A stretch of 64,000 bases of DNA from Macrostomum lignano (taxonomy: Eukaryota). The notes beneath the pieces are model-generated. The model saw nothing but the letters and a program-made list of their open reading frames with translations, was not told the origin of the DNA and did not search any database. Every line of letters begins with the position of its first letter. Position 1 is the first letter of the stretch. The position numbers and the translations under genes were made by a program. This document shows, one piece after another, positions 1,059 to 62,617 of this stretch. The stretch covers positions 73,278 to 137,277 of the forward strand of contig NIVC01000938.1 of the NCBI GenBank assembly GCA_002269645.1. The letters run 5' to 3'.

Positions 1059-27763
<26,705 letters not shown>

Positions 27764-37804: not shown

Positions 37805-39448
37805 CTACACGACACATGTAAATGACCTTGGGATTAGAAAATCAAGCAGCGGCCTGTCTGCATACTTAGTAGGACAATTCCGTCTTGCATACCACTCCAT
37901 GCTGTACAGACACATCAGCACGCCTGTGCCAAGAAACAGGCAAACCCAGACAAATACAGCCCAGAAACGGGAGCGACCGTTGGCAAACATTAGCGCAAAT
38001 CCGAAACTGCAAAATGAGACAAATAATGCCGGAAAGAAGAAGCCTAAACCGAAAGAAATTACAATTTCGTGGAAGATGGCCGACAGGAGGAACACGCAGA
38101 CGGTTGCTAACAGACGATATTCGTATCCAAGCAACATGCAGATCTCGCGATACACATAGGCGTATAGCCAATCGTGTACAACGGTATTCCAAGTTCGGTA
38201 CCAAGTTCTAAACGACGTAGCATTCCACCAATCGCAGTAAAACTGTCTATCGCCAAATGTAAGCATTTCCGCGAAAGCGTTCATCCACGAGTGCAGAACA
38301 GTGAAGAATGTGATTAGCAGTACTAGGCCGCCAGGTAGAGCCGATTGGAATGCTGTGCGAACAAAATGAGCCAGACTGGGCCTACGCCAATGGCTAAACA
38401 CTGGTCGATAGTAGCGCAGCACCAACAGGTAGACAAAGAATATTCCGGCAACAACTTGACCAAGATTAGACGCCACGTAGTCCCATCGGATGTGATCAGT
38501 TCGCGGATAATTATCCCGATAAACCAGAGTTGGGGCGAATAAAAAGTACAAGAACCGACCGAAGCTAGGACAACAAGGCGTCAGACTAGCAGTTGACGAA
38601 GAACTATCAGAAGCGGTGGCGCTACAACTACCAGTCGACGAATAGTAACCACGACGTGCATTCTCCCAAAGGAAAGCGTGAACCTTCATCATTAGGCGAG
38701 CCTGTTCGGTTAGTACTATTAGAGCAGAGGCGGGCAGCAATTCAAACTGCAGAACCATACGAATCGGCTGCACTAGAAACCATAGCTGATAAACTGAGTA
38801 AGCAATCATCCACATAGACTTACTAATCCGACTATGGCCTTTAGTGCCAGCAATGCTTACATAGTAGTGAAAAGCCGGATAAAAAACTAGCAAAGCAGCC
38901 GCGTGCATCAACAGCCAGATTGCTATAGCGTCGGATAGCCGACCGAATGCCCAGAACACTAGCGACAAGGAGAATGTGTCAATCAAGGATTTACCTTCTA
39001 GAACGTCCGAGATAAGCGTGTTTAAACAGAACAGCGACATTATTGCAATGAAGATGTTTTGCAAACTGCGAAAATGCGCCAGTTCAAACAGCTCAGTTAG
39101 TAGACTATTGCGCAAGTGAAAGGTTTTCGGAGGCAGACGCTGTTCAACTGACAAATTGTCATCATTCTTGCCTTGACGATTATTTTTAGCCTGGTAACTA
39201 ATATTGGCGTCGAGAGCGGCTAAGGAGTCTAGTGACGTCATGCGAGCGGTTTCTGAACTCGCAGGTGCATCTACCAATGACGTCTCAAGCTCCGTTGACG
39301 CTCTGTCAATCAAGCCAGTCAGCTGTGAATCCAACAGCTCCAGAATCGACTGCTTGTCGTGTAGAAACTTTCGACGCCGACGAGCGTCTTCGAGTACGTT
39401 TAAACTGCCGTTGCTTCGCCTGGCGTTTTCTAATGACGACCGGTGCAT
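37805..39448 (-). CDS. SOAT1: Sterol O-acyltransferase (ACAT/SOAT, MBOAT family), intronless, 547 aa
   Basis: Motifs YFLFAPTLVYRDNYPR, HSWMNAFAEML, FYCDWWNATSF, WNTVVHDWLYAYVY and catalytic SAIFHE; many transmembrane segments. Confidence 0.92.
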   Translation of the reverse strand: MHRSSLENARRSNGSLNVLEDARRRRKFLHDKQSILELLDSQLTGLIDRASTELETSLVDAPASSETARMTSLDSLAALDANISYQAKNNRQGKNDDNLSVEQRLPPKTFHLRNSLLTELFELAHFRSLQNIFIAIMSLFCLNTLISDVLEGKSLIDTFSLSLVFWAFGRLSDAIAIWLLMHAAALLVFYPAFHYYVSIAGTKGHSRISKSMWMIAYSVYQLWFLVQPIRMVLQFELLPASALIVLTEQARLMMKVHAFLWENARRGYYSSTGSCSATASDSSSSTASLTPCCPSFGRFLYFLFAPTLVYRDNYPRTDHIRWDYVASNLGQVVAGIFFVYLLVLRYYRPVFSHWRRPSLAHFVRTAFQSALPGGLVLLITFFTVLHSWMNAFAEMLTFGDRQFYCDWWNATSFRTWYRTWNTVVHDWLYAYVYREICMLLGYEYRLLATVCVFLLSAIFHEIVISFGLGFFFPALFVSFCSFGFALMFANGRSRFWAVFVWVCLFLGTGVLMCLYSMEWYARRNCPTKYADRPLLDFLIPRSFTCVV

Positions 39449-40908
39449 CTTGTGGCTGATCTAAATACCACAGAGAAGCTGACTGTTTATTATAATGAAC
39501 TATTCGCCGAACTCAAGTTCGGTCAAAATTGTCCGACAAATTTTAAGCCGTCTCCGTATCGAGTCTTGCATCAAGCAAAAGAGCAAAAGGCAGAGGGCGC
39601 CAATTTAAAGACTTTGAAAAATGAAAAAATGGTCTGGAAACATTTTATCAAACTGTTATCAAACTGCTATCTCACTCAAGGCGCTCCTAAGGTACTCGCA
39701 GTTAGAGTAGCTAGCTTCAGACAGCAACAATCATTATCAGTTGTGTAAATTGCTAACACTATTATAAACCACTGATAGTTATCCACTGCAGCACGAACTT
39801 GGACTCGAACTTGGGTGCGATGGCCCCCACTTGAACTTGAACTCGAACAAGCGCACTGACAAAAACGGGGGAAAAAGAAATATAAAAATATTGACGCTAA
39901 AGATATATAGATTAAGCTACACTGAATTCAAAACAGAAACAGCAACAATAAGACTATCTGCGCAAGCAGTAAGTAACTTTAAAGTACGCTCGTATATTTT
40001 TAATTCAAACTTATTAGTCAATTAAATTAATATACAAGTAACGCAAATAAGGAAAGACTTGCAAATACAACAACAGTAACTAACAGTAGAATTCAGAATA
40101 AAATGCGACTGCAAATTTTCATTATATTTTGCACTATCTAATGTTAACTCATCGTTAAATAATACCCTTGTAAAACTGTATATAACCTTGAAGCAATGCA
40201 TAATTTTTTTAAATTGAAAATTTTTTATATATTTTCTCACAACTCTTAACAGTCAATAGTTTCAAGATTTAAAGAATCTCCACACGGAGTAGAAAAAGTA
40301 GAAAAACATTCCGTTAAAACTTGCTTGCGTCATTACACAACCGAAAAGTTTGTATATAACAATATAAAACCTAATCTTTTTGTCTACAAGTTAACACAAA
40401 AATAATTTGTAGCACAAGTTTTTAAAAGCAAACTTCAATTTTTTTCAATATTCATCTAGCTGCTTTAGTTAGTTACTTGTGTCTTTGGAGTTGGAGTTGA
40501 GCAGAGAATGTCTTTGGTCAAGTCTGTCTTTGATTCGCTGATGGGGAAAGAGTTGAGCCATAGACTTAATTTCACAAGGTTCTGGAGAAACACTTGTTTG
40601 CTTTAATCTAGGGAAGTGACGATACAGAGCTTTGTTATCACTTATGACGGTCTAAATGGGAATTCGGACAATCAAAACGGAACGCCATAGACATTCAAGC
40701 CAGGCCACAGATCACACACACACAGGTCATGGTCATGGACTGAAGCAGTTTAGCAAAGTCTACTGAGGGAGGCTTGGCCATAGACTATAACTTTGGACAT
40801 TCAATATCGGAGAAAGCCTTTCAAAACGGGAATCGGACTGAGATTTTACAGCTCTCTGTCCGTCCCTTCCCTGTTTGCTCGTCTTTGGCCTGAAAGCGAC
40901 CCCATTCA

Positions 40909-41867: not shown

Positions 41868-44629
41868 TTAACCAACTGCAGCTTGCGACAACAGAGCCAA
41901 AATCTCGGCATTATCAGTTAGATCCTCAGGCTTGACGGTCTCAGACTCGTCCTCAACTGAGATGTCGAATTGTCCACCAGAAGCCAGCAACAATGCGACT
42001 ACAGTCTTAACGGATTCGATTGATTGTGTAGAGGCTACGGCTGTGTGCAACGGAGTCATACCGTCACAGTCCGGTCTATTAGGATCAGATCCCAGCTTCA
42101 GCAATTCCCTACAGGCTGCTTCATCAGCTCGATCAGCTGCCCAATGCAACAGAGTCTGACCAGCAGAGTCTGCGCTAGATTTTGCCAATTCCGGCTTGCT
42201 TTTTAACAGTGCCCGAACTCGTTCGGTTAAACCGTCTGATTTAAACAAAGTGAAAGCTTGCAAGATTTCTTTATCAATTTTATCGTCATGTTCAACATCG
42301 TTGTCGCCTTCAACACTGCCTAGCGCCGTCATTGTGCTGACTCTGGCGCCAAATGCTGCACCGCCAGCGCCGCTGTCTTTGCCAAATTTTTTATCAGAAG
42401 AAGACCAATCAGGAAAACGATCGCTGACAAAGGCTACGTACTCTGACATGGCCGTTTCTGTCGGCATTTGGCCCAACGAGTGCCAAGCGTCCCTGTTGTG
42501 ATATTTATACATTTTAGTTGCTACGTCACTTGATAATTAATAACTGATTTCTATTGGATTTATCAAGTCTCAGTACTATTTTATCCGTATCTCTAATCTC
42601 AGTTGATATCTTCATTGGGTATCTCTAATCTCAGTTGATATCTACATTGGGTATCTCTAATCTCAGTTGATATCTTCATTGGGTATCTCTAATCTCAGTT
42701 GATATCTTCATTGGGTATCTCTAATCTCAGTTGATATCTTCATTGGGTATCTCTAATCTCAGTTGATATCTTCATTGGGTATCTCTAATCTCAGTGGATA
42801 TCTTTATTGAGTATCTCTAATCTCAGTTGATATCTTCATTGGGTATCTCTAATCTCAGTTGATATCTTCATTGGGTATCTCTAATCTCAGTTGATATCTT
42901 CATTGGGTATCTCTAATCTCAGTTGATGTCTTCATTGGGTATATCTAATCTCAGTGGATATCTTTATTGAGTATCTCTAATCTCAGTTGATATCTTCATT
43001 GGGTATCTCTAATCTCAGTTGATATCTATATTTGGTATCTCTAATCTCAGTTGATATCTTCATTGGGTATCTCTAATCTCAGTTGATATCTACATTGGGT
43101 ATCTCTAATCTCAGTTGATATCTTCATTGGGTATCTCTAATCTCAGTGGATATCTTTATTGAGTATCTCTAATCTCAGTTGATATCTTCATTGGGTATCT
43201 CTAATCTCAGTTGATATCTACATTGGGTATCTCTAATCTCAGTTGATATCTACATTGGGTATCTCTAATCTCAGTTAATATCTTTATTGAGTATCTCTAA
43301 TCTCAGTGGATATCTTTATTGAGTATCTCTAATCTCAGTTGATATCTTCATTGGGTATCTCTAATCTCAGTTGATATCTACATTGGGTATCTCTAATCTC
43401 AGTTAATATCTTCATTGGGTATCTCTAATCTCAGTTGATATCTACATTGGGTATCTCTAATCTCAGTGGATATCTTTATTGAGTATCTCTAATCTCAGTT
43501 GATATCTTCATTGGGTATCTCTAATCTCAGTTGATATCTTCATTGGGTATCTCTAATCTCAGTTGATATCTACATTGGGTATCTCTAATCTCAGTTGATA
43601 TCTACATTGGGTATCTCTAATCTCAGTTGATATCTTCATTGGGTATCTCTAATCTCAGTTGATATCTACATTGGGTATCTCTAATCTCAGTTGATATCTT
43701 TATTGAGTATCTCTAATCTCAGTGGATATCTATATTTGGTATCTCTAATCTCAGTTAATATCTACATTGGGTATCTCTAATCTCAGTTAATATCTACATT
43801 GGGTATCTCTAATCTCAGTCAATATCTATACTGGGTATCTATAATCTCAGTCAATATCTCTAATCTCAGTCAATATCTACATTGGGTATCTCTAATCTCA
43901 GTTAATATCTACATTGGGTATCTCTAATCTCAGTTAATATCTACATTGGGTATCTCTAATCTCAGTTAATATCTACATTGGGTATCTCTAATCTCAGTGG
44001 ATATCTATATTTGGTATCTCTAATCTCAGTTAATATCTACATTGGGTATCTCTAATCTCAGTCAATATCTATATTGGGTATCTATAATCTCAGTCAATAT
44101 CTCTAATCTCAGTCAATATCTATGATATTGGACACCTCTAAACTCAGACTAGATTCCATCGGGTAACTCGTGTTTTTTAAAAACTACTAAAAATTTAAAA
44201 AATCATTCAGACTGTTCCGGGGACTAAAAACCCATTTAAAAGTACTTATTAAACTTGTATAAAAGCATCACTGGATATCTATTATCTAAAGTCTCCTTAA
44301 AAAATCTTACCATTTCTGTTTGCCTTGAAAATCGAAAAATCCAGGTCTCGGAATATTGCAAGGTCCGTCCAGAGCCTAAAAATTCAAAGTTTTGAACTGT
44401 TTAAAACTGAAAAATGCATTTTTCCTACTAACATAAGTAGAAGAAAACGCATTTTATAGCTGAAGAATATTACCTGCTTATATCTGGCGTAAAGATACAG
44501 CAGTTCGTCAGGCTTCAAGTTGCCAGTTGCGCTTCGAACGAACAGCGAAGCGCCTTGAAATTCTTTTTTTAAAGGCGACCAACTGTCCATTGAATCTTCG
44601 TCTTCGGAATCCAAAGGGTTACTCATCAT
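41868..44629 (-). CDS. ACBD6: Acyl-CoA-binding domain protein 6 (ACB domain plus ankyrin repeats, 281 aa)
   Basis: Exons 44474-44629, 44311-44375, 41868-42492 join in frame. LLYLYARYKQA..GPC..PRPGFFDFQGKQKWDAW (ACB domain) and GQTLLHWAADR / GMTPLHTA (ankyrin). Confidence 0.9.
42580..44125. repeat. 32-bp minisatellite TATCTCTAATCTCAGTTGATATCTTCATTGGG
   Basis: Direct reading; fills ACBD6 intron 2. Confidence 0.96.
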
Positions 44630-44739
44630 TCAGCTGGAAAACAGTAATCTAATTAAAATAGGTTATTGTGAATCATAGGATTGTTTCTAGATTAGGTCAG
44701 AATTAAGTTTTCAGAAAAATATTATGAGTGTTATTGTTA

Positions 44740-45950
44740 CTGAGTCTCTAGATCAGGATTGTAAGTCTCTAGATCAGTATTGTGAGGCTCTTGATCAGTA
44801 TTGTAAGTCTCTAGATCAGGATTGTCAGTCTCTAGATCAGGATTGTGAGTCTCTGAGATCAGTATTGTGAGTCTCTAGATCAGGATTGTGAGTCGCTGAG
44901 ATCAGTATTGTGAGTCTCTAGATCAGGATTGTGAGTCGCTGAGATCAGTATTGTGAGGTTCTTGATCAGTATTGTAAGTCTCTAGATCAGGATTGTAAGT
45001 CTCTAGATCAGGATTGTAAGTCTCTAGATCAGGATTGTCAGTCTCTAGATCAGGATTGTAAGTCTCTAGATCAGGATTGTAAGTCTCTAGATCAGAATTG
45101 TAAGTCTCTAGATCAGGATTGTAAGTCTCTAGATCAGGATTGTAAGTCTCTAGATCAGGATTGAGTCTCTAGATCAGGATTGTCAGTCTCTAGATCAGGA
45201 TTGTAAGTCTCTAGATCAGGATTGAGTCTCTAGATCAGGATTGCAAGTCTCTAGATCAGGATTGTAAGTCTCTAGATCAGGATTGTCAGTCTCTAGATCA
45301 GTATTGTAAGTCTCTAAATCAGGATTGTAAGTCTCTAGATCAGGATTGAGTCTCTAGATCAGGATTGTGAGTCGCTGAGATCAGTATTGTGAGGTTCTTG
45401 ATCAGTATTGTAAGTCTCTAGATCAGGATTGTAAGTCTCTAGATCAGGATTGTAAGTCTCTAGATCAGGATTGTAAGTCTCTAGATCAGTATTGTAAGTC
45501 TCTAGATCAGTATTGTAAGTCTTTAGATCAGGATTGTAAGTCTCTAGATCAGGATTGTAAGTCTCTAGATCAGGATTGTAAGTCTCTAGATCAGGATTGT
45601 AAGTCTCTAGATCAGGATTGTGAGTCTCTAGATCAGTATTGTAAGTCTCTAGATCAGGATTGTAAGTCTCTAGATCAGGATTGTAAGTCTCTAGATCAGG
45701 ATTGTAAGTCTCTAGATCAGGATTGTAAGTCTCTAGATCAGGATTGTAAGTCTCTAGATCAGGATTGTGAGTCTCTGAGATCAGTATTGTGAGGCTCTTG
45801 ATCAGTATTGTAAGTCTCTAGATCAGGATTGTAAGTCTCTAGATCAGTATTGTAAGTCTCTAGATCAGGATTGCAAGTCTCTAGATCAGGATTGTAAGTC
45901 GTTAGATCATTATTGTGAGCCTCTAGATCAGGATTGTGAGCCTCTCAATC
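44740..45950. repeat. 21-bp minisatellite GATCAGGATTGTAAGTCTCTA
   Basis: Direct reading; fills most of the BCS1L-ACBD6 gap. Confidence 0.96.
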
Positions 45951-46163
45951 AGGTTTGAGTTTCATACGCTTTAAAACTTGAAATTCTTAGTAAACAATGA
46001 AAGCAAAGGGGACTTAAGACAAAGAAAATGTTACTATTTTGTAAATCACTCAACTTTAAATATGTTCTTATATTATATTTAGCTAATTAATTATGCTACA
46101 ATTGAACTAATTCAGCACTTAAGCGGCCAGAATATTAAATGCCAAATTTACAACTCCAAGCCT

Positions 46164-47179
46164 TCAAGCAGCCTCAGCAACAGTCAGGCAGTCAGTAGCC
46201 GAATCCAAAGCCGCTTTCCAATCTGATTTGTGCATTAGAAAATGTCCTTGCACTTTAGCCGGACTAATTCTGGCGCTTTCAACGCAATCAATTGAATCGC
46301 TAATTAATAATTTATTAGCAAATTCTTTAGCCGCTTCCATACCGGCCTCGGGATAAAACCTGGCAAACATTCGGACCAGCTGATCTCGGGTGCAGTAGCC
46401 AATTCGGACGTAGAGGTCAACTCGACCTGGCCGGGTCAGAGCTGGGTCCAGCCGCTCGGGGTAATTAGTAGTCATAAACAGCAGCCGGCCCTCAGATGAC
46501 GTCACCCCGTCTAAGGTGTTCAACAGGCCGGTCAGGCTGATCCCGGGCATGCCGGAGTACCGGCTAGGCGACTCGGCTAATCTAGCTTGAGCAGCCAGAG
46601 CGGCATCGACATCTTCCAGTAGCAGAACAGACTGAGGCGGCGCGTGATTCAACAGGTGGTCCAGGCGGGCATCGTCTAAGCCGTATTCGCCCAGGTTCAG
46701 CATGCAGATTGAGCACTGGAGAGAGCCGGCCAAAGCTGTGATGAAGCTGGTCTTGCCGCAGCCGGGCGGCCCGTGCAGCAGGTATCCGCGTCGGTAGGGG
46801 ACTCCGCGGTCCGTGTACCAGCGCTGGCTGGATTGGAACTCCCTGATGTCAGCCAGGAGCGATTCGGCTTGGCCAGCTGCAAGAATCACCTGCGGTTATG
46901 CATTTGTTGAGCAATGGATTATCAGGTGGACTTTAGCGTGAGGAGAGGGGATAAAGGAAAATGGGAGAGAGTAATGTAGCTTATAGTGAGTGACTAATTT
47001 TTCCCAGTTCCTTTCCGGATACTGAATTACAAATAATCAGGCATTAGAAACCGGGACTCCAACCCGCGTCTATTCAATTATCCAACTAAATGCGTTAATC
47101 TAAACGCTATCATAATATTATAACTTTTAGCATCGATCTGCAGGTAAAAGCTGGTTCAAAAGCAATACCTGAATGTCTG

Positions 47180-47231
<52 letters not shown>

Positions 47232-47461
47232 GGCAGACAGGCAGGCAGACAGACAGAAAGACGGCAGACAGGCAGACAGACAGAAAGACAGACAGACCGG
47301 CAGACAGACAGGCAGACAGGCAGACAGACAGAAAGACAGACAGACCGGCAGACAGACAGGCAGACAGACAGGCAGACAGACAGACAAACAGACAGGCAGA
47401 CAGACAGACAGACAGACAGACAGACAGGCAGGCAGACAGACAGAAATACAGACAGACCGGC

Positions 47462-47513
<52 letters not shown>

Positions 47514-47581
47514 CGGCAGACAGGCAGGCAGACAGACAGACAGACAGGCAGACAGACAGACCGGCAGACAGACAGACCGGC

Positions 47582-47617
<36 letters not shown>

Positions 47618-49285
47618 CGGCAGACAGACAGGCAGACAGACAGGCAGACAGACAGGCAGACAGACAGACAGGCAGACAGACAGGCAGACAGACAGACCGG
47701 CAGACAGACAGACAGACAGACAGACAGGCAGACAGACAGGCAGACAGGCAGACAGACAGGCAGACAGACAGGCAGACAGACAGGCAGACAGACAGGCAGA
47801 CAGACAGACAGGCAGACAGACAGACAGACAGGCAGACAGACAGACAAACACAGACTCACGGATTCAACCGGCCGCCTCCGCCTGGGATAGCCGAACGGCT
47901 CCCACTCGGCGCCCCTGGCCTTGTACACCACAGTCCAGCCCTCCCTAGCCTGGAAAGCCATCTCCCTGGCCTCGTCCAGCACCCGATCGAAGACGCCCCG
48001 ACCGCGCCCGATGGCCGTCAGTCGAACCGATTCGAATGGCGACGTTTCGCCCGTTCGCTCTCGACGCATCTGGGCTTCGCGATTGCGCTCAACTCTAATC
48101 CAGGTGCCGCCGTAGCGAAAGAAATGATTGCCAACGCTCGGCAGGTAGGAGCTCCTGTTGTTGGTGAAAGGACAGTCTTTAATATGCGTTTCTCTTTCTA
48201 CTGTTATCTCTCCACTCTAACTTATCCCTCCCTATCATATACTGTCCCTTCTTTACCTACTCTTTCATTTTCTTATCTACTCTCTCACATATTATCTACT
48301 CTCTCCTATCCTTATCCACTCTCTCCTATCCTTATCCACTCTCTCCTATCCTTATCCACTCTCTCCTATCCTTATCCACTCTCTCCTATCCTTATCTACT
48401 CTCTCCTATCCTTATCTACTCTCTCCTATCCTTATCTACTCTCTCCTATCCTTATCCACTCTCTCCTATCCTTATCTACTCTCTCCTATCCTTATCTACT
48501 CTCTCCTATCCTTATCTACTCTCTCCTATCCTTATCTACTCTCTCCTATCCTTATCTACTCTCTAACCTCCTTATCTACTATTTCCCTTCATATCTACCA
48601 TCTCCTATTCTTATCTACTCTCCATCCTCCTTATCTACTCTCAACTCTCCTTTCTTATCTACCATCTCTTATCCTTATCTAGTGAGCTCTCCTTATCTAC
48701 TCTCTCCCTTCATATCTACCATCTCTTATCCTTATCTAGTGAGCTCTCCTTATCTACTCTCTCCCTTCATATCTACCATCTCTTATCCTTATCTAGTCTC
48801 TACTCTCCTTATCTACTCTCTCCCTTCATATCTACCATCTCTTATCCTTATCTAGTCTCTACTCTCCTTATCTACTCTCTCCCTTCATATCTACCATCTC
48901 TTATCCTTATCTAGTCTCTACTCTCCTTATCTACTCTCTCCCTTCATATCTACCATCTCTTATCCTTATCTAGTCACTACTCTCCTTATCTACTCTCTCC
49001 TCACTTAGTAATTATCCGGCCACTGTCGCTCTGTTCCAGCGCAGTCTGCACGCTAACATGCTGACAATTGCCAACCCGCTTAGTGATCCACTGCAGCAGC
49101 CAAGCATAGCTGGGATCGTGGCTGGGCACTTCAAGCGTGGCCGTGTAGCGACGCCGCAAAAAAATAGCGCCCAATTGTGCGCCACGACGCAGCGCGGTGA
49201 GGCCAACTCCTACTCCGGCTAGGCCGAAACCGGCGCCAAAGTACGGATTGTCCTTAAATAGGTCGTTGAAGTAGTCTGAGACGCC
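46164..49285 (-). CDS. BCS1L: Mitochondrial AAA chaperone BCS1 (no genomic start codon in first coding exon)
   Basis: Exons 49005-49285, 47860-48154, 46164-46889 join in frame (433 codons before stop). [39 protein letters not shown], Walker [10 protein letters not shown], Walker [28 protein letters not shown]. Confidence 0.95.
47178..47852. repeat. (GACA/GGCA)n compound microsatellite
   Basis: Direct reading; BCS1L intron 2. Confidence 0.95.
48240..49000. repeat. CT-rich 20-bp repeat (CTCTCCTATCCTTATCYACT) grading into a longer unit
   Basis: Direct reading; BCS1L intron 1. Confidence 0.92.
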
Positions 49286-51852
49286 CTGAAGCGAGTGAAA
49301 ATAACTTTGAGGTTATTTTAGTGGTAAAATAGACTCTAGTGTACAATTTTATACCATAGTAAAAGAGGATTTCTATGTAAAAAAAAAACAGAAGGAAATC
49401 TTCAATCAAATATACTAAAAATTATTGCTCTATTGCAGGGATTAGCAAACTCTGGCCCACAGACAACAAACAGACATAAAATGTTCACTATGACTTTCTT
49501 TATAGCAAGGTTCAACTTTTCCTAGACCATGGTTTAGAAACTTGCCAAGGGCTATATTGCCTTCAATGAAAAAGCAGACTTTTCTATTTAAATAAAAATG
49601 CAAAAGCACTAGTCAGACACTATTTAGATGCTTAAGCTTGTTGGTGCTATTGTGAGCTGCTTTGTGAGATATGTTAGTAAAACCACAAGAACTTTCTGAT
49701 GCACTAAATAGTAAGTAATAGATCATGGCTTTGCACTTTTCTTAAATGCATTAGACTTAATCCTACCAAATATATCAATTTCTTATAGACTATAATACCT
49801 AGTCAAACCCTAGATACACAAAATGGCTCATGGAAAAAAATGTTTTAATAAAACTACTCTCACCTATAAGACAAAAGCAATTTAGGCCTAACTGCATTCT
49901 AATCTATTAGACAATTCTAGCAATATTTTTATTATAATCTGTCAAGATATTTAGGAAGAATAGATCAACTACAAACTAGAATAAAATTAACTATAAAGAC
50001 ATGGCATACATATTCTCAAAGATACTGTTTTTTGGAAAAATTCTTATATGCAACTAGGTTTTCAACAGTTTACTATTATGTACATGGTGTAAGACCAAGA
50101 TAGCCATATACCAAGATGGCCACAATATTCAATTGCTATTGTATCTACTCTTTTTCTATTATTAATGACGTAGGGCTTGCTTCTGTCCTTATAAATAATT
50201 CCACAATGCCACCAAAGTTATAACAAGGCTTTTGGCTCTCTCTAGAAATCCCACCGTTGAGACACCAAAGTTGTTACAGGGGTTATTTCTTCCTCACGAC
50301 CTTACTGGTTACTACTTGCCTTCTACTAGTACTGCATGTCTACTACTTCTATTGGTAGCATATGTACTTTTATTGGTAGCATATATACTTTTATTGTACT
50401 TTCTGGCCTGAGCGGTCTTTTAGGCACTGTCTATCCTATCCTTATATTCCTCTAAAGATATTATTCTCAGTCCTGGGCATTCCTGGGATCAGAGGGTCAC
50501 AGCGCACTTCGCTGGGTATTCTGCCCTGAGGTGGGTTTTTCAGACTCTAAGCCTAGATTTCTCTACACTGTGGTAGGAATTCTGCCTTCTAAAGGCGGGT
50601 TACTAGACTCCTAAGTCTAAGATTTCTCATTCTCTGAGAACGGACTGAACTCCCAATCTTGGGGCAACTCCTATGTCACTATCTACTACTTGAAATAAGT
50701 AACACAAGTGATCACAAGCCCAAGGCTGATTTGAAGCTTGATCAATGTTCGAAACAATGGTACAAGACCAACAAACAAGAAAAGGTTCACAAGGTTATTT
50801 ATTTTGGCTCCCAGCTGACTCCTATTTATAGTAAAATTTTCCTAGTATATAAAACAAAGTATTAATACATAGAATATTTAGAATATTTTGCATATAATAA
50901 ATATTTTTATATTCGCATAGTATAACAACAGTAGTACATTTTTGAAATGCAACTTTTTCTAAGAAATTGTTATAAAAACTGGAGGCCTATTATATTAATT
51001 AGCAATTTCATAGCTATTGTTGTATTTATTATTATGTTAATCAATCATATTTATCAATACTAATATAATAATAGATTTGAAACTAATGACCAATAATATA
51101 AAACCAATTGATATTTTTCAGTGCTTGTGCCAATTTATTCTCTATCATATATCTATCAATATCAAATCTATTACTATCAGTTTATCAAGAAACCATTGCT
51201 AGTGCTAGTGGTACTGGTAATGCTATAGAGCAAAATGGGATCAATATGCAACAAGGTATTTATTTTGTGCTAGGCTACTTGATTTATGTAGTAGATAAAT
51301 ATCTATAGGCCAGGCTATAATAAAAGCTAAAGCCAAAAAGAAATGATTATAATACAATATAATTCTATTTCTATCTATCTTCTTAAGACTTAAAGATCTA
51401 CACCTAATAAAAATTACTACAAATAGAAAATAAGTGAAATATGTAGACCTAGACTTATTATTATCTATTTAGACATTTAGAACTATGGCCATCTTAGTGT
51501 ATGGTCCTATAGACATCTTGGTCATGTGACATGTACACAATGTATATCAAAAAATCAATAAGTTTTTTGTATACTCTGTATAATAGCGCACATAATTTTT
51601 TTTAATATTGGTCTTGGTCTTGGTCTTTGGTCTATCAACTTTGACATTATAGATTTGATCTGACCCTTATATAAGCAAAGTGAAAAAATTGTTACATGTA
51701 TATATAGCTATGTATAACATCTAGGCCTAGCCAAGCTGGCCAATTTGGTTATTTGGCAAAACACTGCAGCCAAAACAAAAAGTCACAAAAAATGCTCTCC
51801 CAAAAAAACCAATATAGTACTACATAGTTGGCAATGCTATGTTCCAGCCAAA

Positions 51853-58065: not shown

Positions 58066-60039
58066 ATGTTTGAGCTAATTCTTAACAACGGGCAACTGTC
58101 GAAGGCAGATCTGCACACTCAAAACGACATCACAAGCTTCCTGCAGGGCCCCAAAGAGTGGCTTACATTCGTCAATTGTATAGCCAACGATGATGTCGAG
58201 GACTTGCGAGTAGCTTCAAAGAGTTTTAATTGGAAAGAGTTTCTGAAGAGCTCCGACATTAATGCCATCTGGTCTGATTGCGAATCGAACTTTGCGCATC
58301 CATCAGCGATTGGTAACTCAAAGCATCCGTTTCCTACTAATCCGTTTTTTATTGCCATCTTCTACAATGCCCAGCGCTGTCTCCGGTTTATGAACGAATC
58401 CGACGTCGACTTCTCTAGGATCAGCGATAACGGCTTTACGGCGTATCACGTGCTGATGAGCGCGATTCGCTTCATGACTGACGAGAGCGCCGATTCCGCA
58501 TCAGGCTCGGGCATAACCGAAGAGTGCAAAAGTCTGTTAGCTCTGTTTCACAAGACTCTTTTCACGGCAGAGCAGCAACGCCGCATGCTAAATGTAACCT
58601 GCAAGCTCGGCATGGCCCCACTCAGTTGGGGAGTGTTTCTCGGCCTGGCAAACTACGTCGAGTACATCATGACATTCTGCGTTCCAGCCCCCGTCGTGAA
58701 TTCCGACGCTACTGGACTAAATGAACGCGTCAGCATTGACGTGTCCGAAATGACCGGCGATTATTCCAGCTTTTTCACAAGCCCAATTTGTGTCCTGGTC
58801 GACATGTACGGACAGAGCACTTTAGCGGAGATCAAGGCTCTTGGAATTTTCCGGACTGGCTTTATTTGGAAGCAGTGGGCCGAAGTGTTGTACATGCGCA
58901 ATCGCTTCTTCACCGCGCTGCTTCTGTCCAACGTAATTTTCCTCACCGCGGCAACGGTGTCAGTTGTTGGCGGCGGTGTCAACGATTTTCTTAAGGCCAG
59001 GTGTTCAGGTCGAGATTTTCCATTTCCAATAGGAGTGTTCCTCATCTTGGTTTACTGGTTCTTTTATGCTACATTTGGAACTGCCGCCAGCGGCTACAGT
59101 CTCTGGCGCAAAGAGCAGTACAGGTAAGTATAGAAACTTTAAATACGCTCGTGGTCCTGAAGGGATACTTAATTATAACGGTATTTAACCAATGTTTCTT
59201 CCAGAAGAAAAGTTGGCTATCCGATTGCGCCTAGGCATGCGCACGTTGACATGCTGTTTTGGTTCCTGCCGTGGATGCTGTCTATTCCCATCTCAACATT
59301 TCTCTTATGGCTTTACTCGGACACTGGCAACAGTTGCAGACTGCTGGGCGATCACATCTGCTCTGTGAGCGGCTGCTGCATTCTACTGTTGCTGCTTACT
59401 AGTGTATCGCTAATCGTTGCCTATCTCCGACTGGTCCCATCGCTTACAACCCTGATGACCAGTATGTACAAGAGCATTGGTACATTCACCGTGTTCATCA
59501 TGCTCTACTTGGTACTAACTGGCGTCTTCACACGCGTATTTCAAGTGCGCCTGTTCTCTGCTAGCAGCGATTATGTAGTTAGAAACAGCACCTCAATATC
59601 GGAGGAGAATAGTGGCCCAAAATCTGTCAACTTCTTCACCGCCTTTTATCGAACGTTTCTAGTGTCGCTAAACATTATCGATTCGAGCATGCTTTCACCA
59701 ACGGATGATCGAATCGACATGAGCATCACGCATATGATCTACATCCTGTTTGTACCTGTTCTGTTTCTAAACTTTGCGATCGGCATTCTGACATCGGTTG
59801 TAACGCACGTTCACGAGCACAGTCCAGAGAATCGCTACCTTCTCATATTGTCGGTGGCGGAGTTCTCCGAGATGATTTTGTCGCCAACTCGGTCGGCGAT
59901 AAGGAAACTAGTGGGAAGCAGCGGTGAACAGTTGGTGCTTCGTTGCTGCCGTCCAGTGAGTAGGCACAGCCGACTTCTGGCAGCCAACAATGAACGGCTC
60001 TCGGCTGTGCTTGAGGCCAAGAATTGTCAGCAGAACTGA
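58066..60039 (+). CDS. Divergent TRPV5/6-like cation channel, paralog A (630 aa)
   Basis: Exons 58066-59123 and 59205-60039 (81-nt GT-AG intron, in frame). Ankyrin-like N-terminus (PFFIAIFYNAQRCL, NGFTAYHVLM), six hydrophobic segments, pore helix FYRTFLVSLNIID, S6-like VPVLFLNFAIGIL. Confidence 0.75.
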
Positions 60040-60624: not shown

Positions 60625-62617
60625 ATGACGGCAAAAGTAGCACCAAAATCTATGGATGGTAAAGAGACAGCCAAATTGCTAATGGATATTAAAAGAATTG
60701 TCAATAGCCGTTCGGAATGGCTGGCATTTGTAAAGTGCATCGCGACCGACAATGTTGACGACTTAAAAGCGGCCTCTCGGCGACTCAATTGGAAGAAGTT
60801 CTTACAGAGCTTCGACACTTCTGGTACCTGGTCGAATTGCGATCCAAACTTTTTGCACACGTCATCGATCGGTAACTCAAAGCACCCGTTTCCGACAAAT
60901 CCGTTTTTTATTGCCATCTTCTACAACGCTCAGCGCTGTCTCCGGTTTATGAACGAATCTGGCGTCGACTTTGCTGAGATTAAAGACAACGGCTTCACTG
61001 CGTATCACGTGCTGATGAGCGCGATTCGCTTCATGACTGACGAGAACGCCGGTTCCGCCTCAGGCTCGGGTATGACTGAAGAGTGCAAGAGTCTGTTAGA
61101 TCTGTTTCACAGGACCCTGTTCACGACGGAACAGCAACAGCGAATGATTCAGACCTTGTGTAGGTTCGGAATGGATCCGATGAGCTGGGGCGTGTTCCTA
61201 GGCCTGGCGAATTACGTTGAGTACGTCCTAATCTACTGCTCTCCAACTACTCTGGCTCACTCAGACACTGAAGGTCTTAATGAACGAATCTCGTTTGATG
61301 TGTCAGATTTTACTGCCGAGAATTTCTGCTTTTTCACCAGTCCTATCAGCGTTCTTGTAGATATCTACAGCCAGAGCACCTTGGCTGAGATCAAAGCGTT
61401 AGGAATCTTTCGTACCGGCTTTCTCTGGAAGCAGTGGACCGAGGCATTGTACTTGCGCAATCGAGTGTTCTTTGTTCAATTCTTGTTTGTTGCACTGATA
61501 TTTACATTCGCAAGTGCATTTTTCGCCGGATCGAACGTGTACGAATATTTAAATGATCGGTGTTCTGACAAGCCATTTACGTTTCCATACGGTCTACTTA
61601 CAATACTAATTGGCTGGATTACGCTTGGTTTCTTTGGCACCGTAGCAGTTGTTTACGGTTATATGCGCAAGGAACGCTATCGGTAAGCGAATTATTAATT
61701 ATCACACAGTTTCATCAAATCATTATTCACAAAGTTAAAACTGAAAATAAAAGTAAATTTTATCTCCTTTTAGGCGCTCTGTAGGATATCCCTGCTCGCC
61801 GCGAAAAAATGTCGGCGACATTCTTGGCTGGTACCTGCCGTACATCTTGGCCTTCCCGACATCAATTTTTCTACTCTGGATCTACCTTGACACTGAGCAC
61901 AGCTGCGCCTTGCTAGGTCAGCAAATTTATCCAGTTAGCGGCTGCGGCATCATGCTGCTTCTAATAGCGGGTTTCTCTCAGATGATCAGCTTCTTGCGGC
62001 ATTTGCACTGCCTAACAGCAATGATGAGTAGCCTCTATCGAAGCATGGTGACGTTCTCGTGGTTCTTCCTTCTCTACGTACTGCTCACTGGAGTTTTCGC
62101 TAGAATTTTTCAGTCTAGCTTTGCCTTCTCTAGAGCAGAAAATTCGACCACAACCCGACCGGATAATCTGGCCGAGTTTCTCAAGTCCTTCTATCAAACC
62201 TTTCTGGTTTCGCTTAACATCGTCGATGCAGAAAAGTTTTATCCGGCTAGCGATCGTATTGACCTAAACGTGACGCACGTATTCTACGTCTTGTTTGTTC
62301 CTGTGCTCTTCATCAACTTTGTAATCGGCATTTTGTCATCGATTGCCGCTCACGTGCAGGAACATAGCGTTGAGAACAGGTACATGCTGATGCTATCCGT
62401 GGCAGAGTTCGCTGAGACCACTTTCTTCCTAATCCACAAGCTATTAAGTAAGTGCTTTCGTCGGCGAGAGGTTCGTATAAAACTCTGCGGTCCTATTCGA
62501 AAGCAGAGCAGGCTTATAGTGAACTGCTATTGCTCATTCGAATCAGCAATCGATGCGCCATCGGACACGTGCGCGACAGGACACAGAGACAGCGAGAGTC
62601 GAAGCAGTCTGTTTTAA
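60625..62617 (+). CDS. Divergent TRPV5/6-like cation channel, paralog B (633 aa)
   Basis: Exons 60625-61682 and 61774-62617 (91-nt intron at the same position and phase as paralog A; first exon is 1058 nt in both). Pore FYQTFLVSLNIVD, S6-like VPVLFINFVIGIL. Confidence 0.75.

Follow-up and report, generated by a model that had tools for sequence, protein, structure and literature searches.

We analysed a 64,000-nucleotide stretch of the genome of the flatworm Macrostomum lignano (assembly GCA_002269645.1, Mlig_3_7), which corresponds to the last 64 kb of scaffold NIVC01000938.1 and is called the window below. Positions in the record are obtained by adding 73277 to window positions, so that window position 49285 is NIVC01000938.1:122562. 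The minus strand of the window carries the gene for the mitochondrial chaperone BCS1, whose coding sequence (CDS) opens directly behind a 3ʹ splice acceptor and has no start codon of its own. The initial annotation proposed that the initiator AUG of BCS1 is donated by the spliced leader (SL) during trans-splicing. Our analysis supported this interpretation, and the leader AUG very probably initiates M. lignano BCS1.

The three exons of the gene (Table 1) joined into a CDS of 1302 nucleotides encoding 433 amino acids, identical to the GenBank protein PAA74579.1. In a protein search, the match with 100% identity was the M. lignano 'mitochondrial chaperone BCS1', and the next-best matches were BCS1 proteins of other animals, with 47-57% identity. 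Pfam recognised BCS1_N at residues 25-193 (4.8e-38), AAA at 228-356 and AAA_lid_BCS1 at 360-423. The order of the domains was as expected for BCS1, with an N-terminal transmembrane and targeting segment followed by BCS1_N, the AAA ATPase and the BCS1 lid.

On the minus strand, the gene's 5ʹ end reads TAA (49315-49313) CCT CAA AGT TAT TTT CAC TCG CTT CAG (49288-49286) / GGC (49285-49283) GTC TCA GAC TAC TTC AAC GAC, where the slash, here and below, marks a splice junction. The initial annotation had placed the start of the first exon directly after the acceptor in phase 0, at GGC GTC TCA, and this was confirmed at 49285. The frame, described there as closing at a TAA about 10 codons back with no ATG, is indeed closed by an in-frame TAA, 9 codons 5ʹ of the acceptor, and we found neither an ATG nor a near-cognate start codon in these 9 codons. 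The first in-frame genomic Met, expected after about 120 residues and beyond the transmembrane anchor, proved to be residue 123; it sits past the hydrophobic anchor (49240-49190) and well within BCS1_N. The ATGs of the presumed outron, at 49530, 49477 and 49357, open reading frames (ORFs) of just 2-11 codons, and BCS1 therefore cannot be encoded by RNA lacking the trans-spliced leader.

We aligned M. lignano BCS1 with 13 animal orthologues from vertebrates, echinoderms, amphioxus, molluscs, a priapulid, insects and a tardigrade. The initiator Met occupied column 1 in all 13 orthologues, and the first Gly of the M. lignano protein fell in column 2. An invariant block of 10 residues came directly after the start of the alignment; the Walker A motif GPPGCGK and the EDVDAA block were also invariant, and the full-length identity of M. 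lignano BCS1 to animal BCS1 was 52-57%. The claim that one added Met aligns the protein with the N-terminus of its orthologues thus held in every case, with M one column before G in 13 of 13. By this alignment, exactly one residue, Met1, is absent from the genomic BCS1, which leaves no space for a missing coding exon.

The M. lignano spliced leader has 35 nucleotides, CGGTCTCTTACTGCGAAGACTCAATTTATTGCATG, and ends in ...TTGCATG (PMC8629364; PMC10468722). A leader that did not end in AUG had been named in the initial annotation as a finding that would overturn its proposal; the M. lignano leader does end in ATG. In the SL RNA gene a GTAAG donor stands directly after the leader, approximately 30% of M. 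lignano genes are trans-spliced, and the top enriched trans-acceptor motif is [T/C]TNCAG (PMC8629364). The sequence CTTCAG/GGC at 49291-49286/49285 fits this motif. When the leader and the BCS1 CDS were joined in silico, they formed an ORF of 434 amino acids, beginning MGVSDYF, that ran from the first ATG of the mRNA with no intervening stop; the leader ATG lay in frame, 32 nucleotides from the 5ʹ end. Among the 15 AG sites located between -150 and +90, only 49285 kept the whole conserved N-terminus in frame with an ATG placed before it, and the remaining ones led to a wrong frame or to a shortened N-terminus. The in-frame position of the BCS1 AG with respect to the leader ATG is more than chance. 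A search of the 64-kb window for the leader, allowing up to 3 mismatches, gave no match, and hence the window holds no SL RNA gene.

In the databases, the cluster of M. lignano BCS1 at 90% has four members: GenBank PAA74579.1 and PAA93459.1, both marked 'partial', and UniProt A0A1I8FUE6 and A0A1I8HKX1. All four entries, which come from two sources, begin with GVSDYF and have no Met. We take the UniProt entries to derive from an older WormBase ParaSite annotation. The deposited GenBank CDS for PAA74579.1 spans 3122 nucleotides, is 'partial' and starts at window 49285, where the sequence resumes behind the AG. Three full-length BCS1 variants with a Met placed in front were looked up by exact match among approximately 15 billion proteins, and none was present. 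In the literature, we found no explicit statement on M. lignano BCS1 or on the gene identifiers Mlig021660 and Mlig000667, and no paper that treats either BCS1 or initiation at the leader AUG for this species in particular. In A0A1I8HKX1, residues 25-41 (window ~49212-49160, in the membrane anchor) read the +1 frame of the same DNA, after which the normal frame resumes; this frameshifted stretch most likely reflects two indel errors in an older assembly or gene model.

For the Mlig_3_7 annotation, RNA-seq reads containing the leader were trimmed and mapped, transcripts were cut at the resulting peaks (TBONE), and ORFs were called by TransDecoder (PMC5730564). Since this pipeline trims the leader and cuts at peaks of SL reads, a gene dependent on the leader AUG would be expected to yield a 5ʹ-partial CDS starting at the base after the acceptor. 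A transcript model reaching a few codons further 5ʹ would meet the in-frame TAA and would therefore give no ORF starting at G. The 5ʹ-partial boundary of BCS1 fits what the pipeline would give for a site of SL reads.

A second copy of the gene is present at a paralogous locus (L002) on scaffold NIVC01000027.1. Its 120 nucleotides upstream are the same, except for a single T within a T-run, as is its AG/GGC start. Outside tandem repeats the two loci are 97-99.8% identical, and they are therefore recent duplicates. Between the two CDSs, 11 codons show synonymous and only 3 show non-synonymous differences (I92V, E373D and E396Q), which argues that both copies are under purifying selection. From this comparison, the start without Met is older than the duplication.

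Our proposal for the expression of BCS1 is as follows. The pre-mRNA would be transcribed from somewhere in the AT-rich upstream region of ~8.8 kb; the outron would be removed and the 35-nucleotide leader joined at the CTTCAG acceptor, yielding a mature mRNA with ...UUGCAUG/GGCGUCUCA. Reads of the BCS1 mRNA would be expected to show the junction of leader and exon at 49285 as ...CTCAATTTATTGCATG. The terminal AUG of the leader, which stands 32 nucleotides from the cap and precedes every other AUG in the mRNA, would serve as the BCS1 initiator, and initiation there would give a 434-residue protein that keeps its whole N-terminal membrane anchor and targeting region. A single N-terminal transmembrane helix, which belongs to the targeting and sorting domain, holds Bcs1 in the inner membrane (PMC7994207). 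Since a product starting at Met123 would have neither the anchor nor the greater part of the BCS1-specific domain, we infer that only trans-spliced mRNA would give functional BCS1.

Initiation at a leader AUG has been known in flatworms since 2006; BCS1 adds a well-supported case from a lineage of flatworms not covered before, and the GenBank record already implies it. According to the account given in PMC9851317, Cheng et al. (J Biol Chem 2006) found that the 3ʹ-terminal AUG of a flatworm leader can act as initiator; the same account puts the leader AUG in frame in 28% of trans-spliced Schistosoma mansoni transcripts, with more than 40 complementary DNAs (cDNAs) requiring it. According to a 2025 survey, each flatworm leader that has been reported ends in ATG (PMC12582326). 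In Echinococcus, too, SL-bearing cDNAs were described that depend on the leader AUG, and this usage was argued to be phylogenetically conserved (Parkinson et al. 2012, PMC3510090). The S. mansoni BCS1 gene, Smp_083120, is itself listed as trans-spliced; it averages 6941.5 SL-trapping reads and has 14 RNA-seq reads that contain the SL (PMC5832876, Dataset 5). BCS1 was not found in the supplements of the Echinococcus SL paper (PMC3510090) or of the pan-flatworm SL paper.

The M. lignano gene resembles the Schistosoma mRNAs that use the leader AUG in that the leader ends in AUG and joins in frame at codon 2 of a conserved protein, a start codon is absent from the gene itself, and the product agrees with the orthologues at its N-terminus only with the leader Met. 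However, M. lignano is a free-living member of Macrostomorpha and not a parasitic neodermatan, its leader sequence differs, and the use of the AUG was demonstrated experimentally in Schistosoma, whereas for M. lignano BCS1 it is deduced from sequence and annotation. As in Echinococcus granulosus, the leader AUG is required for the N-terminus to correspond to conserved orthologues, although the evidence there consisted of full-length cDNAs containing the leader. There is also a likeness to the slORFs of nematodes, Oikopleura and trypanosomes, in which trans-splicing brings the initiation codon (slORFfinder, PMC9851317). Those start mostly at near-cognate NUG codons and are new or alternative ORFs, whereas BCS1 would receive a canonical AUG that completes an ancient conserved ORF. 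Start codons are made at the RNA level elsewhere too, by ACG-to-AUG editing in plant organelles and by U-insertion editing in kinetoplastid mitochondria. There, as in BCS1, the encoded gene has no start codon and a step at the RNA level is needed for translation; however, both the chemistry and the machinery are entirely unlike, as is the compartment: those cases involve base editing for organellar genes, whereas BCS1 is a nuclear gene and the step would be spliceosomal trans-splicing.

Several points weigh against initiation of BCS1 at the leader AUG. It has U at -3, which makes for a weak Kozak context, although the base at +4 is G. A homology search with the Met-prefixed N-terminal 123 amino acids returned only short fragments from other animals, with at most 59% identity, and no Macrostomum transcript product. 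The annotation boundary is interpreted through the pipeline as its authors described it. The two gene copies, at 97-99.8% identity, are too alike to give comparative depth; the second one is of use only for excluding an assembly error and for the 11:3 count. Trans-splicing of S. mansoni BCS1 is weak support, as a sensitive method found trans-splicing in most of the genes that are expressed in cercariae (PMC5832876). The layout of the locus, the absence of Met relative to the orthologues, the frame and the annotation boundary were read directly in this analysis, and the leader sequence, the acceptor motif and leader-AUG initiation in other flatworms were taken from the literature; both the joining of the leader at 49285 and initiation at its AUG in M. 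lignano are deduced from these.

The absent Met could alternatively be supplied by an unannotated cis-spliced 5ʹ exon that ends in ATG, or in ATG plus whole codons, and joins 49285 with no involvement of the leader. An acceptor by itself cannot tell cis- from trans-splicing, parasitic flatworms use common acceptors for both (PMC12582326), and 10 ATG/GT junctions occur in the 10 kb upstream of BCS1. However, an ATG followed by the consensus donor GTRAG was not found in these 10 kb, and both the RNA-seq-guided annotation and the UniProt entries show no upstream exon and leave the CDS open at G. Moreover, the ~15 billion proteins include no Met-bearing version of BCS1, and the orthologue alignment allows just one further residue. 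An exon of this kind was the other finding which, according to the initial annotation, would speak against a donated AUG; it appeared neither as ATG/GTRAG nor in the annotation, although an exon with a weak donor would not be recognised from sequence alone. We consider a cis-spliced start very unlikely.

Still less probable, in our view, is that BCS1 starts from a codon other than AUG or from Met123 inside the protein, giving a non-canonical or N-terminally truncated protein with no donated AUG. Non-AUG starts are documented in trans-splicing organisms (PMC9851317) and an AAG stands in frame at codon 11 of BCS1; however, the segment between the TAA and the acceptor is devoid of near-cognate codons, and a start at Met123 would lose the membrane anchor and ~100 residues of BCS1_N, which make up the domain for targeting and sorting. 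Conservation of the first 20 residues, both with the orthologues and between the two copies, implies that they are translated. That the absent ATG is an assembly error, or the BCS1 locus a decaying pseudogene, is hardly credible: although duplications and repeats abound in the M. lignano assembly and A0A1I8HKX1 carries its frameshifted stretch, the acceptor sequence is identical on two separate scaffolds, the ORF of 433 amino acids is intact with 3 of 3 Pfam domains and invariant Walker motifs, and the 11:3 ratio of synonymous to non-synonymous differences between the copies indicates constraint.

If BCS1 starts at the leader AUG, it offers a clean case in which a nuclear gene, conserved and presumably essential, is untranslatable from the genomic sequence alone. 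For annotation, this would account for the Met-less 'partial' entries of BCS1 in M. lignano and of similar genes, which would not be truncated models and become complete once the leader Met is added. Leader-AUG initiation, demonstrated experimentally in parasitic flatworms, would be extended to an early-branching, free-living flatworm for which transgenesis is available (PMC5730564). The case alters no concept, as the mechanism was published in 2006. Because Schistosoma BCS1 is also trans-spliced, we considered that the loss of the genomic start may be ancient and common to rhabditophoran flatworms, a possibility that we hold to be doubtful. If it were true, an essential assembly factor of the respiratory chain would have relied on the leader AUG over hundreds of millions of years, and the loss would act as an evolutionary ratchet that makes SL trans-splicing unlosable and explains the terminal AUG in every flatworm leader.

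Two further ideas were rejected. N-myristoylation of the Gly exposed after Met removal was discarded on the basis of the motif, given the Tyr at position 6. BCS1 as a downstream gene of an operon was discarded because the nearest upstream annotated gene is ~8.8 kb away and on the opposite strand.

Table 1. Coordinates of BCS1 and of the neighbouring SOAT/MBOAT gene in the window.
Feature	Position	Strand	Remarks
In-frame TAA	49313..49315	minus	Closes the frame 9 codons 5ʹ of the first coding base; from the sequence
3ʹ splice acceptor CTTCAG, putative trans-splice site	49286..49291	minus	AG at 49287-49286; fits [T/C]TNCAG; GenBank CDS begins at the next base
Presumed outron, proximal part	49286..49700	minus	AT-rich, with a T-run
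BCS1 coding exon 1	49005..49285	minus	Begins GGC GTC TCA (GVSDYF...), ends ACTAA/gtgagg, phase 2
Hydrophobic N-terminal membrane-anchor segment	49190..49240	minus	Residues 17-33 including the donated Met; conserved block in the orthologue alignment
BCS1 coding exon 2	47860..48154	minus	cag/G AGC TCC ... GAA TCC/gtgagt
First genome-encoded in-frame ATG	48067..48069	minus	Residue 123 as encoded, or 124 when the donated Met is counted
BCS1 coding exon 3	46164..46889	minus	cag/G acceptor; AAA ATPase and lid domains, stop TGA
MBOAT-family (SOAT/DGAT1-like) ORF	37805..39448	minus	Own ATG at 39448; Pfam MBOAT
Candidate acceptor tatttag/ 5ʹ of the SOAT/MBOAT gene	39460..39462	minus	AG overlaps an in-frame TAG

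Tandem repeats occupy much of the non-coding sequence around the BCS1 exons. A 59-bp unit repeated 12.6 times (48253-49001) takes up intron 1 as far as the exon-1 donor, a (GACA)n tract of ~670 bp (47180-47850) starts ~10 nucleotides past the exon-2 donor, and a 21-bp unit repeated 58 times (44743-45957) lies between BCS1 and an ACBD6-like gene. The lengths of the tandem arrays differ between the two BCS1 gene copies.

BCS1, the ACBD6-like gene and the SOAT gene are arranged head to tail on the minus strand (46164-37805), with gaps of ~1.5 and ~2.4 kb, and the same order is found at the second locus. The initial annotation also held that an acceptor of the SOAT gene would place the SL AUG in frame. 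The arithmetic is correct: at the candidate site, tatttag/ATC AGC CAC AAG ATG CAC, the exon would run from 39460, 12 nucleotides before the gene's own ATG (39448), and a leader AUG would be in frame and add MISHK, giving MISHK-MHRSS.... This candidate acceptor is a TAG and not a CAG, and in-frame placement has a 1-in-3 chance of arising at random. The annotated product of the paralogous SOAT gene at the second locus has 547 amino acids and begins at the gene's own ATG; an exact look-up of the SOAT protein of the window returned no record.

The ACBD6-like gene, with an ACBP domain and ankyrin repeats, is represented by minus-strand ORFs at 44629-44384 and 42512-41868. It has a motif-perfect acceptor, ttttccag/CTGA, 4 nucleotides before its ATG at 44629 (window 44600-44640, minus strand). 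The leader joined at this site would put its AUG out of frame and create an upstream ORF of 5 codons (MLNDE and a stop) overlapping the real start. The S. mansoni orthologue of ACBD6, Smp_147930, is heavily trans-spliced (PMC5832876).

Minus-strand ORFs starting at 27763, 31053, 34424, 39448 and 44629 each have their own ATG at the first ORF; they belong to an ELP1-like gene (MQNLCL...), a membrane protein of 281 amino acids, a CS-domain/NudC-like gene, SOAT and the ACBD6-like gene, respectively. BCS1 is the only one of approximately six genes with recognisable 5ʹ ends in the window that is without its own ATG. The nudC orthologue of S. mansoni is trans-spliced (PMC5832876).

On the plus strand, 58066-60039 and 60625-62617 hold a gene of two ORFs (353 and 262/256 amino acids) in two tandem copies; the C-terminal halves are hydrophobic, and no Pfam match was found. 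This gene is divergent from BCS1 and lies ~8.8 kb upstream of it; at the corresponding place in the second locus, a product of 636 amino acids is annotated.

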